From Macrostomum lignano (taxonomy: Eukaryota), in the NCBI GenBank assembly GCA_002269645.1, contig NIVC01001608.1, forward strand, positions 1-64,000: DNA of 64,000 nt, in the 5' to 3' direction. The translations under genes were made by a program, and so were the position numbers. Below, piece by piece: positions 3,931 to 24,962 of this stretch; position 1 is the first letter of the stretch, and the number at the start of each line of letters is the position of its first letter. Below the pieces are notes generated by a model, which saw only the letters and a program-made list of their open reading frames with translations, did no database searches and was not told where the DNA came from.

Positions 3931-6900
3931 AATAGGCACTATCATTGTATTATTAGTTAGGATATAATTGAAAGTATGTGGCTAATCTTTAGTCTATAGA
4001 CTGAATACTAAATTGCCATATATAACTTTTAGCTATACTACACAATAGCTAGCTATACTTATAGCTGAGCTACTAGTTGCATATCTGCCTATTAAGGTAG
4101 GGTGTCCAGTGAGCCTATTTTTAGCGTGTGCAAAACCGAAAAATGGTAAAAAAGTGGTCTTCTTTAAACAAATGTAACTTTTTAAATATTTAAGATATGA
4201 CAACGTTCTTATATTCATTGAAAAGAAGGCAAACAGATCTTTCAAACGACATATAGTTTACATGTTTAGGACAAACGATTACAAAGATACAGACTGTCAA
4301 ACATTGTGTACATTTTCAAAACTGTGCCAAATTTGCTTGAAAATATGGGATCGGGAAGATTCGTTTTTTAGTAAATGAGTGCATAACTGCTAAGAATGCT
4401 TGCACACTGAGTGTAGGTAACTTCCTGGAGGTCATTTTAAGTGAACTTTTTTTGTTCAAAAATATGTACATGTACATGTACATGTAAAATTTAAAATGGC
4501 CATAACTTTTGAATGGAAATGAGCGGCCACCCTAATTATTTTTGCTACTTAATTTTAATGACAAAATAAAACTTTTAGGCTAGACAGGATTAGTGTAACT
4601 CTTGCCACAGTATGCTTAATGGAAATCGTCAAAATGCATGCAAATCCCCATAAGGGACATAAAAATTGGGAAATTTTTGAAGCTCGAAAGAATGGCCAGT
4701 TAGTTTATTCGATAAAATGATAGCAAAACAGGCAAAACTCTTTGTCCTAAAGGAACATCCTGATAGCTATTGCTGCACCAAAGTTATTAAGCATAATTGG
4801 CACAGGTGTTCCTGCAAAATACACTACAGAGATAGGAAAAATGTACATTGAGGGGTTGTACATTCGAAAAGAAGTCATATATGCAATCTTTTTTAAAATG
4901 ATAGCAGGACTTAGGAGGATATATCCATCCTTTACTTGCAGATCTTGCAGATGCCAGACACGCTGCACCTACATGTATACAGTATCTGCTATGAGCGCTT
5001 GACAAGCTCATGGTGCAGCTTTCTACACAGTCGCCTCTGATCATTCCAGCTGGGCCCGAAGATTGCACTTCGAAGCTTCTTGAAGGCCTGCATTGGCGCC
5101 ACTTTTCTCTAAAGGGGACGAGGTAACAGCAGCAGCAGAGAAATGTTGGCAAATTGGCGTGCTGGAAGTCGACTCTGGCACAGTTGCAGCTGGGACCACT
5201 GCAGGAAAGACAAGTGTCTGGTCCATGTAGATGGCCCAGGGATTCTGCTTGCCAGCAGCTTTCTCGCGCACCTTCGACCTCAACAGGTCCCGCATTTTTT
5301 CCTTCACTTTCATTACTGCCTGCCACAGCCACAGGTTATAAAGTTATAAAGTACATCTGGTTCAGTGTATACAGACAGACTGATACATTCTGCCAAGCTA
5401 ATTAATACAGTATTAAAGCACTAAAATGGAACAGCTGAGTAAAAGCTGAGCTGATTAAAAGGGTTCTCAGTCTCCCACAGTCAATTCAGCTTCTAGCAGA
5501 CAAACTGACTGGGAATGAAAATGGGAGCAGACGAATTGACTGTCATACTCTCATAATGTACATGTACATATACAATGTAATCACGCTGTGTAGTGTACTG
5601 CCCCCAAGATTGTTAGATTAGCTACAAGTGAGTCACTAATGCGACACAAGGTAATTAAGGTAAGTTTAATAAATTAATAACTATTAATATAACAATAATA
5701 AAAAGAAAAATCTCAACATAAAAATGTTACTTTGATAATTTAAATTAAGAAAAAGCACTTTCCTTAGGCTTAACAGGTAATTGTTATACGGAATGGATTT
5801 TGAATATAAAAAATCATTTTCCTGACCACTTGTTTTTATCATAATATTTTCTATTTTATGGCAAAACTGATTCCAAAAAAATTTAAATAGGCCAAATTAG
5901 GTATTTGAATAGAAATTGTATATTGAATAATTATGCTATGATATATAAAAAATATTTCACCAATCACAATAAAAAAGTAACAACTATATGCCTAGAATCT
6001 AGATTATTGCTTAAGTTCAAATGCATTTCATTATTCAATTTTAGAATAAGATTAAGCTAAGTTTTCTATCAACTAAAACTGACAATAGCAGAATTAAAAC
6101 CCATTTTAAGCAATTAACAATATTAGGCCTAACACTAACAGTGTGTTGGTGCCAAAAATTATACTTTGCAAAAACATACAATATATAATATACTAGAGCT
6201 TACCAAGCAAGAACATTAAAATAATTATTTTATAGGCTAATAGTTAGTGGCCTAACTTATTTGTATAAAATTTGCTTGTTTAATTCAGATGGATTTTAGA
6301 TTGCTTGTTATTAATATTGATAGCCCCTATCAATTTGTTGAAAAAAAGTAAAATTTCAAAACTTCATATAAAGTACTTAATTTTTCAAAACCATGCTGAT
6401 TTAGTGATTATCTGTAAATTGTTTGTAAAATAGGTCATTTAGCACCAATGTATCAGTAGACTGTCAATGGACTCAATGAACAATGGTGAATGTGACTTCT
6501 GTGATTCGGATTCTTGTGAAGAACTCAACTAGGCCTACTCAACTCAGGTTTTTTAGTGAGTGACGTTGGACGTATCCGTGCGCTTTCTAAATTTATATTC
6601 TCTGATTAAGATCTCGATATTTATTTTTGAATTAAAAAGCTTGGTAACTGCAGCTAGAGTTTACCAAGATAAAAAATTTTAGGTTGCAACTATTTTTGAT
6701 CAATCGTTTTAGGGGCGATTATAAAACGTAGTGACGTTTTGTTGATTGCGCTTGAAACGTGTTAGTTCAAGTTTTCTAATTTCAAAGAAATACGAGTAAC
6801 ACAACTCTGAATCAATCAACTAATCTATTTTGTCAATCATTAAAACAGGGCTGCTGCTATTAGACATTTGTGAAGAGGGTAACGATCAACATAGAAAATA

Positions 6901-7618
6901 TTTCATACCTAAAGACATTTTTTATTCTATGACAATTTAAACAATTTTTTTCAAAAAAAATTATTTGTATTTATGCAATGCAATACAATAACTTCACGGC
7001 AGAGCTATGGCTATGTGAACAAGATTACTTCTTAATCTGTCTATCTGCCATGATATATTATAAGTACTGATTTACTTGTTGGAAACATGGGTATAAAAGA
7101 ATACTTTAGAAACAACAATGTGTACTTATTCCACTGGATCATGTCTATAATGAGCATATAAATAATTTTTTGTCAATAATATTTTATGTATAGTAGACCC
7201 AAAAGCATATAAAATGTGTTTATAGTGCCAAGGAATTGTGTACTTTTCACTTTTTGTAGCCCCACTCCTAAATAAATTAACTTAAGCCAAATACCATGTG
7301 CTAAAAAATAAATTTAAGTTATAAAAATGTTGTTAGCACTGAAAATAAATATCAAAACAATAAAGTAAAGGTAATGGTTGAGATAACTTAATGAATCAAA
7401 GTGTTCAAAAAGAAGATTAAGGCCATTCAAAGATGAAAATATATAATCCATTTACTCCAACTTATTGTTTGTATTTTGCACCAATTTTGTATTTTGAACC
7501 TATATCATGATTAGGCCTAGTTTTTTTAAAATACTAGGCCTACTTGTTCAAAATAGGTCACACTATACCTTAATATTTGAAATCTTGTTTGCCAACATTT
7601 TTTTCAGAATCAAGTATC

Positions 7619-14347
<6,729 letters not shown>

Positions 14348-14964
14348 GGAAGGAACCTTTTGCTGAGGAAAAAGTTTTTTCACTTTTGTTAAACAATTCA
14401 TATCCACCTCTGGAAGACTGGATCTTGCGCCAGGATCTACAGATTTTTTTGTTCTAAAACTTTTGTTTATTTAATTTTATTTTCCGTTGAATATCAAACG
14501 TTTTAGTTGCAAGATTTTTTGCATACTACTTAGTTGATTTTTTGAGTATTTTATTTGCGAATTATTGCTCATAAAAAGTGATTTCATTAAATATTATTTA
14601 GAATTTAGAACCTGTATTTAGAACGCGTTTTATTCAGTCTATCATACTAGTTTTCTCAATGATTTTTCAATATCGATTCCATATTCTAAGAGGATTTTTA
14701 ATAGCTCAAATGCTTCTCTTTTTGTAAATCTTTTTTTTCAATTCAAGTGATTAAAATGCAAAAAAATTACGCAATACACTGTAAGTTGTGAAGCCAATTT
14801 GCAAACATTAATTTAAATTTGTTTTGCGAAATCACATTTTATTCAACCATTAAGACAGAAGTAAATATTCTGGGGATATCACAGATATGTAATAAATCTA
14901 TTGCATTACTTTGCATAGTATCTGTGGGCAGAATAAGCTTAGCTAATAATCTCATCGAATCTAT

Positions 14965-15815
14965 TCTTCTCAGCTCGTCTTGATCTCAGCTCGTCTAATC
15001 TTGGCTTGTCTAATCTCAGCTTTTGTAATTTCAGCTCATCTAATCTCTGCTTCTTATATCTAATCTCAATTCGTCAAAACTCAACTCATCCAATCTCAGC
15101 TCAACTAATCTCAGCGCATCTAATCTCAGCTCGCCTAATCTCTGTTCAACTAATCTCAACTCGTCTAATCTCAGCTAATCTAATCTCAGCTTGTCTAATC
15201 GCAGCTCATCTAATTTCGGCTTGTCTAATCCCAGCTCATCTAATCTCAGCTTGTCTAATCCCAGCTCATCTAATCTAAGCTTGTCTATCTCAGCTCATCT
15301 GATCTCGGCTTGTCTAATCCCAGCTCATCTAATCTCGGCTTGTCTAATCTCAGCTCATCTAATCTCAGCTTGTCTAATCCCAGCTCATCTAATCTCAGCT
15401 TGTCTATCTCAGCTCATCTGATCTCGGCTTGTCTAATCCCAGCTCATCTAATCTCGGCTTGTCTAATCTCAGCTCATCTAATCTCGGCTTGTCTAATCTC
15501 AGCTCATCTAATCTGGGCTTGTCTAATATCAGCTCGTCTAATCTGGGTTTGTCTAATCTCAGCTCATCTAATCTTAGCTCGTCTGATCTCAGCTCATCTA
15601 ATCTCGGGTTTTATAATCTCAGCTCATCTAATCTTAGCTCGTCTAATCTCAGCTCATCTAATCTCGGGTTTTATAATCTCAGCTCATCTAATCTTAGCTC
15701 GTCTGATCTCAGCTCATCTAATCTTAGCTCGTCTGATCTCAGCTCATCTAATCTCGGGTTTTATAATCTTAGCTCATGTAATCTCGGTTTATCTAATCTT
15801 AATCAGCTCGTCTGA
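14965..15815. repeat. 15-nt minisatellite (aatctcagctcatct) between SGK3 and the phosphatase
   Basis: 5-aa periodic ORFs (SAHLI/SSSNL). Confidence 0.9.
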
Positions 15816-16138
15816 TCTTAGATTGTTTTTTGAAAACCGCCTTTATAGCGCTTTTTAACTAAGAACTAAGAATTAAAATAAACGCACAACCTAAATGCAT
15901 ACGCAAAATGCATGCTATCTTTATTCAGCGAACTTCCTCATTACCATAGACAGTAGCTGGAACTCCAATCTTTCTAGCCGCGTGAGGGCTGCCAACTGCT
16001 GCCCACTAACTGGGGGGATTTGCTATTGCAGACAGACACTAATTAAATAAGAAATGCTTCCGCTGTCTCCCGAAATGTGAGTGAATTGGTTGCTGAATTT
16101 AATAAAGAACTAGGTACCAATCAATCAGGACAGCAGCC

Positions 16139-19100: not shown

Positions 19101-20221
19101 TGTTTGAGCTCAGTCTAGCAATCCAGTGATGTTTGAGCTCAGTCTAGCAATCCAGTGATGTTTAAGCTCAGTCTAGCAATCCAATGATGTTTGAGCTCAG
19201 TCTAGCAATCCAATGATGTTTGAGCTCAGTCTAGCAATCCAATGATGTTTGAGCTCAGTCTAGCAATCCAGTGATGTTTGAGCTCAGTCTAGCAATCCAG
19301 TGATGTTTGAGCTCAGTCTAGCAATCCAGTGATGTTTGAGCTCAGTCTAGCAATCCAATGATGTTTGAGCTCAGTCTAGCAATCCAATGATGGTTGAGCT
19401 CAGTCTAGCAATCCAATGATGTTTGAGCTCAGTCTAGCAATCCAATGATGTTTGAGCTCAGTCTAGCAATCCAGTGATGTTTGAGCTCAGTCTAGCAATC
19501 CTTGGGGTCCATGGCCCAGTCCAAAACTCAAGTGGTCCCTGCAGCCCAGTCCAAAACTCAAGTGGTCCCTGCAGCCCAGTCCAAAACTCAAGTGGTCCCT
19601 GCAGCCCAGTCCAAAACTCAAGTGGTCCCTGCAGCCCAGTCCAAAACTCAAGTGGTCCCTGCAGCCCAGTCCAAAACTCAAGTGGTCCCTGCAGCCCAGT
19701 CCAAAACTCAAGTGGTCCCTGCAGCCCAGTCCAGCAACGTCACCCTGCCGGATCTGCAGGTGCGCCGGCCAGTCCAAGTCGGCTCCTCCGGATTCGTGTC
19801 GAGCAGCCGAGAGACGCAGCGTTCCCTAAGCCTGCTGAACCACTCCGCCTACGATTTCGTGCTGTCCGACCTGCTCTGGTCCGACCCGATGCACCACGGC
19901 ATGCCCTACATGAGCCCGAACGACGCCAACTGGACGTCCCTCCGAGGCTGGCACTTCAACTCGGAGCGCCAGATTGCGTACACGTTCGGCTTCGACGCCA
20001 TCGAGAAGACCATGCAGCAGTTCAACTTGGCCTGCCTGATCCGCGGCCACGAGACCAAGCCGGCCGGCTACGAGTGGCACTACCTCAAGCGTTGCGTCAC
20101 CGTCTTTAGCGCGCCTAATTACACCGGCGGCAACGCTGCCACGGTTGCCTTGGTTACCGAACGATGCAACGGCATCCGTAAGAGGAATCTCCGCATCGAC
20201 CTGGTCATGTTTCCCACCTGA
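16139..20221 (+). CDS. Divergent PP1-like PPP-family Ser/Thr phosphatase, 5 exons, long basic N-terminal extension
   Basis: Exons 16139-16437, 17079-17308, 18171-18335, 18741-18994, 19760 (or 19730)-20221, phase-consistent. Motifs TDIHGQ, GDMVDRG, RGNHE, HGGLSP, DLLWSDP, RGHE, SAPNY all present. Confidence 0.88.
16615..17025. repeat. 50-nt G/A-rich minisatellite in phosphatase intron 1
   Basis: aggccggtag recurs every 50 nt, about 7-8 copies. Confidence 0.95.
17362..17530. repeat. 20-nt minisatellite (gtcatcccagagtcacatgc) in phosphatase intron 2
   Basis: About 8 near-identical units. Confidence 0.95.
17922..18100. repeat. 22-nt minisatellite (gagtcagtgacattgagcagga) in phosphatase intron 2
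   Basis: About 7-8 units. Confidence 0.9.
18355..18560. repeat. Degenerate ~37-nt tandem repeat (cagatcccgaatgggaaatctcagatcagtaagatcc) in phosphatase intron 3
   Basis: Recurrent agatccc..ggaaatctcaga blocks. Confidence 0.75.
19022..19735. repeat. Abutting 29-nt (ctcagtctagcaatccagtgatgtttgag) and 30-nt (gcagcccagtccaaaactcaagtggtccct) minisatellites in phosphatase intron 4
   Basis: 29-mer about 19022-19500; 30-mer about 19515-19735. Confidence 0.95.
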
Positions 20222-21709
20222 ACCGTTTGACTGTGAAGTCACACGTGACTCGATTTTTTCTCGACAGGAAATAAAAAAACTACTTTTTTTCTACAAATTT
20301 TTAGTTCAATACACAGCCACACGAGAGACTGGAGGGAGTTTCCTTTTCTCTATTTAGTCAAGATGGCGCTGCTGTCGTTGTTTCGCGTTAATCTCAATCA
20401 ATTTTGGGTGGTAAAATTACCTAAACAGAGCTACTAATACTGAAAGAAGTAATATTTTAAGCGAATAGAATAATTGGGACGGGTCGGGCTCAATGAAATT
20501 CGAAGCTAATGGGCACCACGTCACAACGTGTACACACTCTGGTACGTATAAATGCAAGATACTCATTTGTACGACAGGCAGGACCGCACGCACAGCTATT
20601 CAGAAACATAAAAATGCGCATTTCGTGTTCTTCCTCCTCCTCTCTCTAGACTAGACTAGACCTGGGCTAGACTAAATTCTGAATGGCAAATTATATGGCC
20701 TTAAACTCGAAGCAGAAGAGACTACCCCCCCCCCAAAATTTTGTTTTTATGAGTCAGTTTTTTCGTCTGTCATGCTCTTCAATCCACCGAAATATTTAGC
20801 CACCTAAAATATAAATATAAAATCTAAAAATTTGCGTTAGTTTTTCAGTAATTCCAACAGTCATCGAGGACGTGCAGTCGGCCTACTAAACGCTTTAACC
20901 TTCATAGGGAAAATAATGACGGGAAATTGTTTTCAGTATACCTTGTTTGATATTTTTCTGACACTAATTGCCGAAAGTGCATGTGCTCACTGTCTAGTTT
21001 AACGTCTACTGAAGAACCAATCCTTGGACAGCTGAAGCAGAGGGACGCTACACACTCGGTTTTAAAAGAAGTGAGCTGTAGGCCTATAAAAAATCAGCTT
21101 TCTCCAGAGCACACTAAATGCACTGGCGAAACGACAAATATGCGATTCTTACCGGCCTCCAGCTCATTGCTAAGAAAGCCGAGTGGTAGCGTCCTTCTAC
21201 TGCAGTTGCCCATGTTAGGAGGACCTCTCAGCACCCCTGTGTTTCTCTGCTGTAAGCAAAGCAAAAGAGCCGCCGTAGGGGTTGGTTGAAGTGAGAGAAA
21301 ACTGACTACAGCTCGGAGAGGAGAGGAGAGAGCGGGGAGGCTGGCTGGGGCCCGAGCGGGGGCTCGGCAGGGCAGGCCTGAGCAGGGAGAGCCGAGCAGT
21401 CAAGCTGACAATGGAGCTCGGGGGTTGGGGTGGGGCTCGATTCCAAAGGCTAGGAGAGAAGAGATTGAGAGGAGGAGCCAACCATTGGTGAGCGCATTTC
21501 TTCATTTCTTCGTCGTTGTTCGAAATTCTAAATAGCTGAGAAGGCGGGCTAGGTGGTAGATCGAGTCCAAACGCTTGCTTGGAGGCTATTAATCAGAACA
21601 GAGAGCTGAAAATTTGAGTCCTTCTGGAGAGTGGACAGTTTTTAGCAGAGTAAAACAGAGCAGAGCTTTGTGGAAAGACTTTGCGTTTGTTTAACAAACT
21701 GACGGCGAT

Positions 21710-24700
21710 ATGGTGAGCATCTGGGTTTTTGCCATTCGGATTTTCATCTGTTTTCGTCTTGGATAAACAGATCAAACACAGTCACGGTCAGAGCAGACAG
21801 CACACCACTGACTGACAGATCAAACACAGTTCACGGTCAGAGCAGACAGCACACCACTGACAGATCAAACACAGTTCACGGTCAGAGCAGACAACACACC
21901 ACTGACAGATCAAACACAGTCACGGTCAGAGCAGACAACACACCACTGACAGATCAAACACAGTTCACGGTCAGAGCAGACAGCACACCACTGACTGACA
22001 GATCAAACACAGTTCACGGTCAGAGCAGACAGCACACCACTGACTGACAGATCAAACACAGTTCACGGTCAGAGCAGACAGCACACCACTGACAGATCAA
22101 ACACAGTTCATGGTCAGAGCAGACAGCACACCACTGACAGATCAAACACAGTTCACGGTCAGAGCAGACAGCACACCACTGACAGATCAAACACAGTTCA
22201 TGGTCAGAGCAGACAGCACACCACTGACAGATCAAACACAGTTCACGGTCAGAGCAGACAACGCACCACTGACAGATCAAACACAGTCACGGTCAGAGCA
22301 GACAGCACACCACTAACAGATCAAAAGCCAGTAACATTTACGCTCAAATTTCACTGACATAACATGCCGATCCGCACTACTTTTGCGCGCAGGAGCCAGG
22401 CATGGACTTTCATCAGGCGTTTCAGGCCATCGACACCGACCACTCCGGTGAAATCTCGGTCGAGGAGCTGGAAGAGTAAGTTGCTGGGGATTTTTCAGCT
22501 AACATGCAGGACTGTGAGAGCATGAGTAAAGACAGAATGAATGTAACAGTCGAATCGCTCACAAATTTGGCATTTCAAGCTACTGCAAGAAGATGAACTA
22601 CAAAGACACGTTCGTGAAAAAGTGGCTGAACCTGTTCGACGAGGACGAGAGCGGCACAATCACCTACGACGAGTATTGCAACACCCTTGGGCTAATTCCC
22701 AAACAGGAGGTCGTTGAGAAGCACAAGGTGCAGCAAACCAAGGTGAGGCTGGCTAATTTGATGCTCTGCAACAAAACTATATAGAACTTTCTAATTTTCT
22801 AATTTTGAAGGTTTTTGTTGACGATTGTTGGGAAAATAATCTTTGTCTAATAACAACAAACCAACAAAATTCGTGTGCAGCAATCCAATTTGCAATGAAA
22901 TAGAAAATTGTAATTAAATTAACCCAGTTTGTTATCGAATGAAACCAAATTGCATGCAAGTCCACCAAATTGCAGTCGAGTCAAACCAAATTGCATGCAA
23001 GTCAAACCAAATTACAATCAAGTCAAACCAAATTACAATCGAGTCAAACCAAATTACAAGCGAGTCAAACCAAATTGCAAGCGAGTCAAACCAAATTGCA
23101 ATCGAGTCAAACCAAATTGCAATCAATTCAAACCAAATTGCAATCGAGTCAAACCAAATTACAAGCGAGTCAAACCAAATTGCAATCGAGTCAAACCAAA
23201 TTGCAATCGAATCAAACCAAATTGCAAGCGGATCAAACCAAATTACAAGCGAGTCAAACCAAATTGCAATCGAGTCAAACCAAATTGCAATCAATTCAAA
23301 CCAAATTGCAATCAATTCAAACCAAATTACAAGCGAGTCAAACCAAATTACAAGCGAGTCAAACCAAATTGCAATAAATTCAAACCAAATTACAGTCGAG
23401 TCAAACCAAATTGCAATCGAGTCAAACCAAATTGCAATCGAGTCAAACCAAATTGCAAGCAACTCAAACCACATTGCAATTAAATTGCATGGAAGTCACA
23501 ACCTGCCCAAAAAACATTTCAGCAAGCTGCCGGCGGCAGCGCCAGCGGTAGCGCAGTCTCTACAACAAAAACAACTACAAAGACTACAACAAAGACGTCA
23601 GCAAAGGGATCAGCAAGCACGTCGAAGCAAGGACGCAGCCGCAACGAGGCCCTGAGCGGCACCGTGCTGATGAAGCTGAGCAGGGCGCGCATGTTCCAGC
23701 GCAAGGCCATCTACCGGCTGAAGAAGAAGCTGGCCCGCGGCAGCGGAAAATCGGCCACCGCCGCATCCGCCTCGAAGGTGCAGCTGACGGAGAAGGTCAT
23801 CGGCGGCGAGAAGAACGGCGGCAAGCGTCTGGTGCCGGACCGGCGGTCGCCGAGGAGTCTGCCAACCAGCGTGCCGCATCGCTACTCGCCGCCGCGGCCG
23901 ACCAAGTGCTTCAAGGATCACAAGCGGCGTCTGAGGGCCTCCATCACGCCTGGCACGGTGCTGATCCTCCTTGCTGGCCGGCACCGCGGCAAGCGGGTCG
24001 TCTTCCTTCGCCAGCTGTCCAGCGGCCTCCTGCTGGTCACCGGGCCGTTGAAGTTCAACGGCTGTCCTCTGCGTCGCGTTGCTCAGAGCTATGTTATCGC
24101 TACGAAGACGCGAATTGACATCAGCGGAGTCAGCCTGCCGGAGAGAGTCAACGACGCTTATTTCCGCCGGTGAGCAATACGAGCGCGTGTTGTAGTCAAG
24201 TAGTTTTTTGTTGTAGCACTGGTAGTTAGAGAGGGCTGAGGATTCTCTGTGAAAACTGAATTGACGTCTGGTTAGGACTACGGACCTAAATGTACAGGGA
24301 AGACAGTGCAGGTTCATCAGGAAAGAATACTGTCTGGGCTGGCTGTGGTAAGACTACGGGGTCATTGGGTAAGACTACGGGGTCATTAATTGAATAAGAC
24401 TACAGGGTCATTAATTGGATAAGACTACGGGATCATTGAGTAATACTACGGGGTCATTGGGTAAGACTACGGGGTCATTAATTGGATAAGACTACAGGGT
24501 CATTAATTGGATAAGACTACGGGGTCATTGAGTAATACTACGGGGTCATTGGGTAAGACTACGGGGTCATTGGGTAAGACTACGGGGTCATTGGGTAAGA
24601 CTAACGGGGTCATTCGGGCTAGACTACAAGGTCAGTGGGTAAGACTACGCAGTCATCGGGTAAGACTGGGTTCTAACAAACAGGAAATCCCCAAAGCTTG

Positions 24701-24962
24701 CACGCATTGAAACTGTGTCTCTCTCTCTGGCAGGGCCAAGCAGCTGCAGGCCAAGCGGGCCAAGCCCAGCTCAGCCGATCCGTTCGCCAAGCCGCAATCG
24801 GCCTATCAGCTGGTTGACGAGAGGCGCGAGGACCAGAAGGCGGTGGACTCGCAGGTGATGACGGCTATTCGAGCATCTCCGGACGCCAAGATGCTGGCCA
24901 GCTACATGAGAAGCCTGTTCAGCTTGAGGAACGGGCAGAAGCCGCACGAGATGGTGTTCTAG
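21710..24962 (+). CDS. EF-hand pair (flatworm TAL-like) spliceable in frame to 60S ribosomal protein eL6; fusion model
   Basis: Possible ATG-only exon 21710-21712 (ATG|gtgagc); 22393/22402-22475; 22580-22742; 23523-24169; 24734-24962. All GT..AG and frame-consistent, including the phase-0 junction 22742/23523. Confidence 0.55.
21770..22320. repeat. 45-nt minisatellite (acagatcaaacacagttcacggtcagagcagacagcacaccactg) upstream of the EF-hand exon
   Basis: About 12 units, some with a 4-nt ctga insertion. Confidence 0.95.
22402..22742 (+). CDS. Two canonical EF-hands ([24 protein letters not shown]), two exons
   Basis: [24 protein letters not shown]|[39 protein letters not shown]; resembles the N-terminus of flatworm tegument-allergen-like proteins. 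Confidence 0.85.
22940..23470. repeat. 21-nt minisatellite (aatcgagtcaaaccaaattgc) between the EF-hand and eL6 exons
   Basis: About 25 units; 7-aa periodic ORFs. Confidence 0.95.
23523..24962 (+). CDS. RPL6: Ribosomal protein eL6 (RPL6) coding exons
   Basis: [92 protein letters not shown]; intron 24170-24733. Confidence 0.95.
24345..24665. repeat. 21-nt minisatellite (ggtaagactacggggtcattg) in the eL6 intron
   Basis: Tandem units, some with aatt insertions. Confidence 0.9.

Follow-up and report, generated by a model that had tools for sequence, protein, structure and literature searches.

A predicted cis-spliced gene joining an EF-hand pair to ribosomal protein eL6 in the flatworm Macrostomum lignano

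Gene structure and domains of the EF–eL6 locus

The window analysed here is a stretch of 64,000 nucleotides from the flatworm Macrostomum lignano (NCBI GenBank assembly GCA_002269645.1, contig NIVC01001608.1, positions 1 to 64,000). Its + strand carries a gene of five exons, referred to below as the EF–eL6 gene, in which a pair of EF-hands precedes ribosomal protein eL6 (Table 1). All introns are of the GT..AG type and, once they are removed, the exons form one frame of 374 codons. We regard the cis-spliced gene structure and the fusion product as highly probable. The spliced protein of 374 residues begins M-EPG-MDFH, ends GQKPHEMVF and comprises a pair of canonical EF loops, a linker of low complexity and a full-length eL6. 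It matches the Pfam families EF-hand_7 (48.9 bits against a cut-off of 30; residues 7–63) and Ribosomal_L6e (PF01159; 117.5 bits against a cut-off of 21.4; residues 262–374). The score for Ribosomal_L6e_N (PF03868) is 19.0 bits against a cut-off of 25, and the motif RN..L....SR.R....K.A.Y of the window protein aligns with that of unfused animal eL6.

EF loops were assigned by the criterion of a paired helix–loop–helix with the 12-residue pattern D-x-D/N-x-S/D-G-x-I-x-x-x-E. Both loops of the window protein have 12 residues and are canonical; the loops are kept in eight lineages, and the Ca2+ loop pattern across the fusion lineages is D-x-D-x-(S/N/D/C)-G-x-I-x-x-x-(E/D). The EF module is acidic, with 17 Asp/Glu compared with 8 Lys/Arg in 75 residues, and adjoins the basic N-terminus of eL6. 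Judged by its sequence, the EF pair is predicted to be a Ca2+-binding module.

The splice sites on which the sequence-only reading of this DNA had been built were all recovered. The eL6 exon starts at 23523, directly behind the acceptor (catttcag|CAAGCT), and its first in-frame ATG, at 23670 (..GTVL-M-KLS), lies past the SRN..L motif, as that reading had pointed out. The donor AAG|gtgagg after 22742 is indeed in phase 0 and closes exon 3, the second of the two EF exons, and read-through of this exon runs to the TAG at 22782–22784. No ATG|GT mini-exon had been noticed between this donor and the acceptor, and a count agrees with this: 22743–23522 contains six ATGs, none of them before a GT and none open to 23523. 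An independent ATG exon within intron 3 was rejected as a candidate, the only long open reading frame (ORF) in frame 0 being one that crosses the minisatellite and terminates before 23523.

At the 5′ end, four ortholog transcripts (L001–L004) read ..GCC ATG GAG CCC GGC ATG GAT, with the same ATG|GAGCC junction as the window. The ATG at 21710–21712, which is followed by GT, is assigned as spliced to 22393 because the contig of the ortholog P0001 has this ATG GAG CCC GGC ATG GAT at its start. The 5′ untranslated region (UTR) of the ortholog gives a weak local alignment with the window that extends to 21437–21539.

Table 1. Exons and introns of the EF–eL6 gene, with the segments of the ortholog contig L001 that align to them (window positions in parentheses).
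Feature	Position	Strand	Content and boundaries	L001 segment
Exon 1	21437–21712	+	5′ UTR and initiator ATG (21710–21712), then donor gtgagc; 5′ boundary approximate	
Intron 1	21713–22392	+	45-bp minisatellite at 21767–22325 (12.2 copies), nearly the whole intron	
Exon 2	22393–22475	+	EF-hand 1; conserved MDFH start at 22402; donor GA|gtaagt, phase 2	112–200 (22384–22472)
Intron 2	22476–22579	+	104 nt, phase 2, gtaagt..tcaag; missing from ortholog transcripts	
Exon 3	22580–22742	+	EF-hand 2 and conserved tail; phase-0 donor AAG|gtgagg at the end	204–353 (22580–22729)
Intron 3	22743–23522	+	780 nt, separates the EF and eL6 parts; a 21-bp minisatellite (22934–23480, 26 copies) takes up 547 nt; acceptor catttcag	
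Exon 4	23523–24169	+	Low-complexity linker, eL6 N-terminal motif and most of the eL6 body; donor CG|gtgagc, phase 2	442–989 (23631–24163)
Intron 4	24170–24733	+	Phase 2; a different 21-bp minisatellite at 24347–24667 (14 copies)	
Exon 5	24734–24962	+	eL6 C-terminus; stop TAG at 24960–24962	1032–1217 (24776–24961)

Three of the four introns are each nearly filled by a distinct minisatellite (45 bp × 12, 21 bp × 26 and 21 bp × 14). An intron of an unrelated M. lignano gene of the TAL-like type (L015, ∼4118–4420) is also filled, in this case by a tandem repeat of ∼35 bp, and minisatellite-filled introns seem to be a habit of the M. lignano genome. Within the coding sequence, a 12-nt repeat (CTACAACAAAGA × 3.1 at 23560–23596) is the source of a run in the linker; the linker appears to have grown by replication slippage.

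Homologs, gene copies and the spliced-leader alternative

A search with the spliced protein returned two-domain, full-length homologs at 99–100% query coverage and 44–74% identity (P0001, 74%; P0002, 67%; P0003, 52%; P0004–P0007, 48–52%; P0009, 44%). The homolog contigs are 1.1–1.6 kb in length, intron-free and mRNA-like, with a short 5′ UTR, a single unbroken ORF and a 3′ UTR. Four runs (SRR28338163-66) each yielded an assembly of P0001 independently of the others; for P0002 there were two runs, and for P0009 two JGI samples. The P0001 contig L001 matches window exons 2–5 in their genomic order and lacks the introns (Table 1), and at the junction of the EF and eL6 parts P0001 reads KHKVYQAQ|QAAGGGSG compared with QQTK|QAAGGSASG in the window. 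In L014, a single continuous exon holds the 5′ UTR, EF pair, linker and eL6 N-terminal motif (..TRNVALNSSRVMRFSRARVIEKKALYR); it ends in tacag|gtgaga, and an AT-rich intron of more than 1 kb comes next. In that lineage, EF and eL6 need no splice to be joined, nor does an acceptor lie between them. L016 (395–1535) is unspliced and contains an EF exon, an intron of ∼195 nt (GTAATT..CCAG) within the linker and a single eL6 exon, which are in frame when spliced. Comparison of these sequences shows that the fusion ORF is conserved and, as the form of the contigs indicates, transcribed in several related lineages.

From the sequence alone, two readings of the locus had been offered. The first, a cis-spliced EF–EF–linker–eL6 fusion, is supported by the intron-free contigs, by the joined exons of L001, by the single exon of L014 and by the annotation of a second M. 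lignano gene, Mlig004334, described below.

The L016 lineage (P0127) departs from the others in two respects: the second EF loop is degenerate (D-x-x-x-S-G-K-I-T-Y-x-H; ..KITYKH) and the eL6 part is without the N-terminal SRN..L helix. It may be a derived paralog. A prokaryote-style gene caller had made two genes of the L016 sequence, an ‘EF gene’ and an ‘L6e gene’; gene calling of this kind on unspliced contigs hides the fusion as two genes.

The paralog Mlig004334 (BOX15_Mlig004334g1 = P0003) is present twice in the genome, as g1 and g2, each of which is annotated as a 419-residue fusion. The gene (L005, 6001–9971) contains seven coding exons, among them an extra linker exon (7530–7646), and its linker is much longer than that of the window protein and rich in Ala, Pro and Gln. 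Two codons beyond the position of the window intron, it has a phase-0 intron of 70 nt (SKGKK|gttagg..cttcag|SGKTAR). Identity to the window protein is as low as 52% in a local alignment and 57–58% in multiple alignments, and the two are therefore old paralogs rather than recent copies from a genome duplication. In public databases, the architecture is present only in the form of predicted proteins, UniProt A0A267FI43 and A0A267GN94, which are named eL6 and carry no remark on it. P0011 (UniProt A0A1I8FLI5, from an older M. lignano assembly) is a garbled model of the window locus, in which the window EF exon and long eL6 stretches with one or two substitutions can be recognized. This model wrongly merges an upstream phosphatase-like ORF (window 19772–20189) with the EF–eL6 gene.

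Several observations weigh against the fusion as the product of the window locus. Seven conceivable products (the fusion from either Met, an eL6 starting with the Met of a spliced leader, two eL6 forms from internal Met residues and two EF-only read-through forms) were sought by exact match in a collection of 15 billion proteins, and none was present. Mlig004334 g1/g2 were retrieved from the NCBI M. lignano protein set, which seems to lack a model of the window copy; only the garbled P0011 matches. In addition, a spliced leader (SL) joined at 23523 would give M-QAAGG.. in frame, and the acceptor TTTCAG at this position, besides being compatible with cis splicing, matches the motif [T/C]TNCAG, which is enriched at SL acceptors in M. 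lignano (PMC8629364), whereas the three other acceptors of the gene do not.

The annotation record would suit a window copy that is silent or decaying, with the Mlig004334-type fusion alone as the working eL6 of M. lignano. However, the ORF is intact over five exons with canonical splice sites, it is under strong purifying selection relative to the ortholog (see below) and the ortholog lineage (P0001 and P0002) is expressed in six runs, so that a silent copy is very unlikely in our estimate.

The acceptor and its phase bear on the second reading, an SL-resolved dicistron, in which the EF gene reads through to the TAG at 22782–22784 and an SL-AUG joined at 23523 yields eL6. The spliced leader ending in AUG that this reading presupposed does exist, as the M. 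lignano SL (CGGTCTCTTACTGCGAAGACTCAATTTATTGCATG) ends in ATG (PMC8629364). Further points in its favour are the phase-0 junction between EF and eL6 in both M. lignano paralogs, a spacer of ∼230 nt without the minisatellite, which is within the operon spacing reported for M. lignano (PMC8629364), and AATAAA/ATTAAA signals inside intron 3 at 22913, 23373 and 23479. On the other hand, a consensus cis donor, AAG|gtgagg, is available upstream; a rule cited in PMC8629364 states that trans-splicing prevails where no upstream cis donor is present. The EF unit has no stop in its own exons, and the relatives all keep the ORF open into eL6; in L014 there is neither an intron nor an acceptor between the two parts. 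The read-through tails differ between the paralogs, that of Mlig004334 being VRKKLDFTYYE. The best 120 matches to the spliced protein include neither an unfused eL6 of M. lignano nor an eL6-only ORF of its close relatives. No SL fragments of at least 12 nt occur in the retrieved contigs or in the window, and an Rfam scan of the whole window gave no matches, so neither an SL RNA gene nor an intronic snoRNA was recognized. The open ORF in relatives, the cis donor, the unconserved tails and L014 thus speak against the dicistron, which we hold to be quite unlikely as the origin of the main product.

A minor SL-AUG isoform encoding eL6 only, beside the fusion, is possible, since the acceptor at 23523 fits the SL motif and the SL ATG is in phase; it is somewhat likelier than the dicistron as main product. 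The argument from the assemblies is weak against such an isoform, because an assembler would clip a 35-nt SL branch.

Upstream of the EF–eL6 gene, an ORF on the + strand (19502–20221) encodes a 10-residue repeat in seven copies and, behind them, the C-terminal half of a PPP-type Ser/Thr phosphatase. The PPP motifs LWSDP, RGH and SAPNY were read by eye, and a Pfam scan of this ORF gave no match. Elsewhere in the window, the region 8000–16000 swings very strongly in strand composition, with a GC skew of −0.56 and an AT skew of −0.51 at 12–14 kb and a value of +0.28 at 10–12 kb, and contains long overlapping ORFs in several frames on both strands, as is typical of low-complexity or tandem-repeat DNA.

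Distribution, constraint and origin of the EF pair

A hidden Markov model (HMM) search without a word index, using a profile from eight fusion proteins against 1.84 billion representative proteins, gave eL6 matches in thousands (699 at E ≤ 1e-30). Both domains were matched in only three representatives (P0005, P0009 and P0127), the remaining two-domain matches being frameshifted M. lignano models. A proteome search for the combined EF-hand and Ribosomal_L6e architecture had been put forward with the two readings as a check, and these three are the full-length representatives that it yields besides the M. lignano mis-models. Among the named sources of matches to the spliced protein, the EF–eL6 architecture occurs in M. 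lignano only. When the eL6 parts are placed in a neighbour-joining tree, the long-branched fusions cluster and are separate from annelid, brachiopod, mollusc, nemertean and insect eL6, except for P0007, which stands alone on a very long branch. These data suggest that the EF–eL6 fusion arose once, long ago, in a narrow and fast-evolving clade to which Macrostomum belongs. The sequence-only reading knew of no described EF-hand–eL6 fusion; we likewise found no description in open-access full text and preprints, and the fusion appears to be undescribed in the literature searched. Seven further proteins of 800–1900 residues (P0137, P0139, P0144, P0145, P0152, P0155 and P0165) end in a full eL6 at the very C-terminus and represent either further N-terminal fusions to eL6 or gene models that run on.

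The three parts of the protein differ in constraint. Between the window and its closest ortholog L001, the nonsynonymous and synonymous differences (pN and pS) are 0.037 and 0.75 for the EF pair, 0.132 and 0.45 for the eL6 part and 0.37 and 0.83 for the linker. Other sequence pairs give the same pN ranking of EF, eL6 and linker, and 30 positions of the EF module are invariant over the eight aligned fusion lineages. The comparison shows the EF module to be under stronger purifying selection than eL6. This constraint, together with the kept Ca2+ loops, argues that the EF pair does work in the protein instead of being carried along by mis-splicing.

Flatworm tegument-allergen-like (TAL or CaBP) proteins consist of an EF-hand pair and a dynein-light-chain (DLC) domain. 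The nearest EF pair outside the fusions, at 62% identity, is that of M. lignano P0122, whose full-length form P0126 (180 residues) scores 74.8 bits for Dynein_light and has the TAL/CaBP architecture. The best single-stretch match of the EF pair in the PDB is 5x2e, the EF domain of a 20.8-kDa tegumental protein (positions 3–70, 61.7 bits). In the fusion protein, there is no Pfam match to Dynein_light, and the fusion is therefore not a member of the TAL family. A TAL-type EF pair, by its identity to P0122 and its match to 5x2e, without Dynein_light accords well with the earlier description of a protein in which eL6 substitutes for the DLC domain. A profile search with the EF pair only (84 candidates, 3 hits) served to detect the TAL-like protein, not to judge the spread of the fusion.

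Intron positions shared with the M. lignano TAL-like gene, which would have pointed to exon shuffling, were looked for, but the positions differ: the TAL-like gene has introns at FVQ|KW and, in phase 2, at EYM|EK, whereas those of the fusion gene lie at ELED|YC and, in phase 0, after QQTK. A simple swap of shared exons is therefore not demonstrated. The TAL/CaBP architecture in free-living M. lignano is that of P0122/P0126, at L015 4001–5147 (NIVC01000281.1). The abstracts of PMC4300400 and PMC12347358 describe the TAL/CaBP family as restricted to parasitic flatworms or to trematodes; a TAL-type EF pair, and an EF pair with a DLC domain, in a free-living flatworm are contrary to this parasite-only description.

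Predicted structure, possible roles and comparison with known systems

The AlphaFold2 model considered here is that of the ortholog P0001 and not of the window protein. In this model, the EF pair (residues 1–80) has a predicted local distance difference test score (pLDDT) of 90–95, the linker (residues 85–105) is below 50 and the eL6 core reaches 96–98, with weaker stretches at 142–154 and ∼290–310. The region of the eL6 N-terminal motif is helical in the model, and the motif SRN..L..SRxxMxxxKxxY of this helix is retained in the main fusion lineages. The top Foldseek matches of the model are eL6 chains of mammalian 80S ribosomes (E 1e-22, 42–44% identity over ∼255 columns). In animals and plants, eL6 adjoins the rRNA expansion segment ES7L on the back of the large subunit, and its N-terminal helix threads ES7Lc at its three-way junction (PMC10281867).

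On this basis, the fusion protein would serve as the eL6 of the 60S subunit. Being N-terminal to the eL6 helix at ES7Lc and attached by a floppy segment, the acidic EF pair would then be suspended flexibly near ES7L, on the solvent side, where it could act as a Ca2+-dependent docking or regulatory module. Overall, the gene probably encodes a cis-spliced protein of 370–374 residues, consisting of an EF pair, a fast-evolving disordered linker and eL6; as an eL6, it would be borne by the ribosome. It is a tentative proposal from sequence and model, which may or may not hold, that the EF pair remains on mature ribosomes and has a Ca2+-dependent action there. More doubtful is the extension that the fusion is the only eL6 in Macrostomum and its relatives, with every cytoplasmic ribosome bearing an EF pair at ES7L; the P0001 and P0002 clusters contain the fusion form only. 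If true, the protein would be a ribosome-resident link of Ca2+ signalling to translation, ribosome localization or assembly, and a built-in ‘specialized ribosome’ feature without a described counterpart.

The EF pair might instead belong to a cleavable precursor. Ribosomal proteins fused to ubiquitin-type domains provide a well-established precedent and, in the manner of ubiquitin–eL40 and ubiquitin–eS31, the EF pair would help to fold, solubilize or escort eL6 and would then be cut off, which would leave plain eL6 on mature ribosomes together with a free Ca2+-binding protein of 9 kDa. An acidic EF module next to the basic eL6 N-terminus would be in keeping with such an escort, the linker is disordered and accessible in the P0001 model, and AAGG/AAGGG follows right after the junction in the window protein and P0001. 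This Gly-Gly is, however, missing in P0002–P0009; no linker motif is shared, the linker varying in both length and sequence by lineage, and the absence of a conserved processing motif argues against cleavage. The constraint on the EF loops and surface, moreover, exceeds the needs of a solubility tag. We therefore consider a cleavable precursor unlikely.

To our knowledge, folded signalling domains have almost never been acquired by core ribosomal proteins, ubiquitin-type fusions being the classic exception. The EF–eL6 gene would amount either to a natural instance of a ribosome equipped with a second-messenger sensor or to a new type of ribosomal-protein precursor. For M. lignano, annotated genome assemblies are reported, as is transgenesis (Wudarski et al., 2017, as cited in PMC8629364), which make the question of Ca2+ and the ribosome directly testable.

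The EF–eL6 gene resembles the SL operons of M. lignano (PMC8629364) in that functionally unrelated coding units follow one another on one strand, the spacer is swollen by repeats and the TTTCAG acceptor is in phase with the SL ATG. It differs from them in that the upstream EF unit lacks an exonic stop, has a strong cis donor behind it and, in relatives, is either joined to eL6 or continuous with it. As in animal eL6 (RPL6), the C-terminal ∼255 residues form a complete eL6; unlike animal eL6, the protein has a folded EF pair ahead of the usual Lys/Ala-rich extension. In Ub–eL40, Ub–eS31 and FUBI–eS30, the appended domain is cut off at a conserved Gly-Gly. The EF–eL6 protein shares with these fusions a small, self-folding, non-ribosomal domain that is conserved and placed in frame ahead of a core ribosomal protein; it differs from them in its unconserved linker, in which no cleavage site is apparent, and in the nature of the added domain, a predicted Ca2+-binding module.

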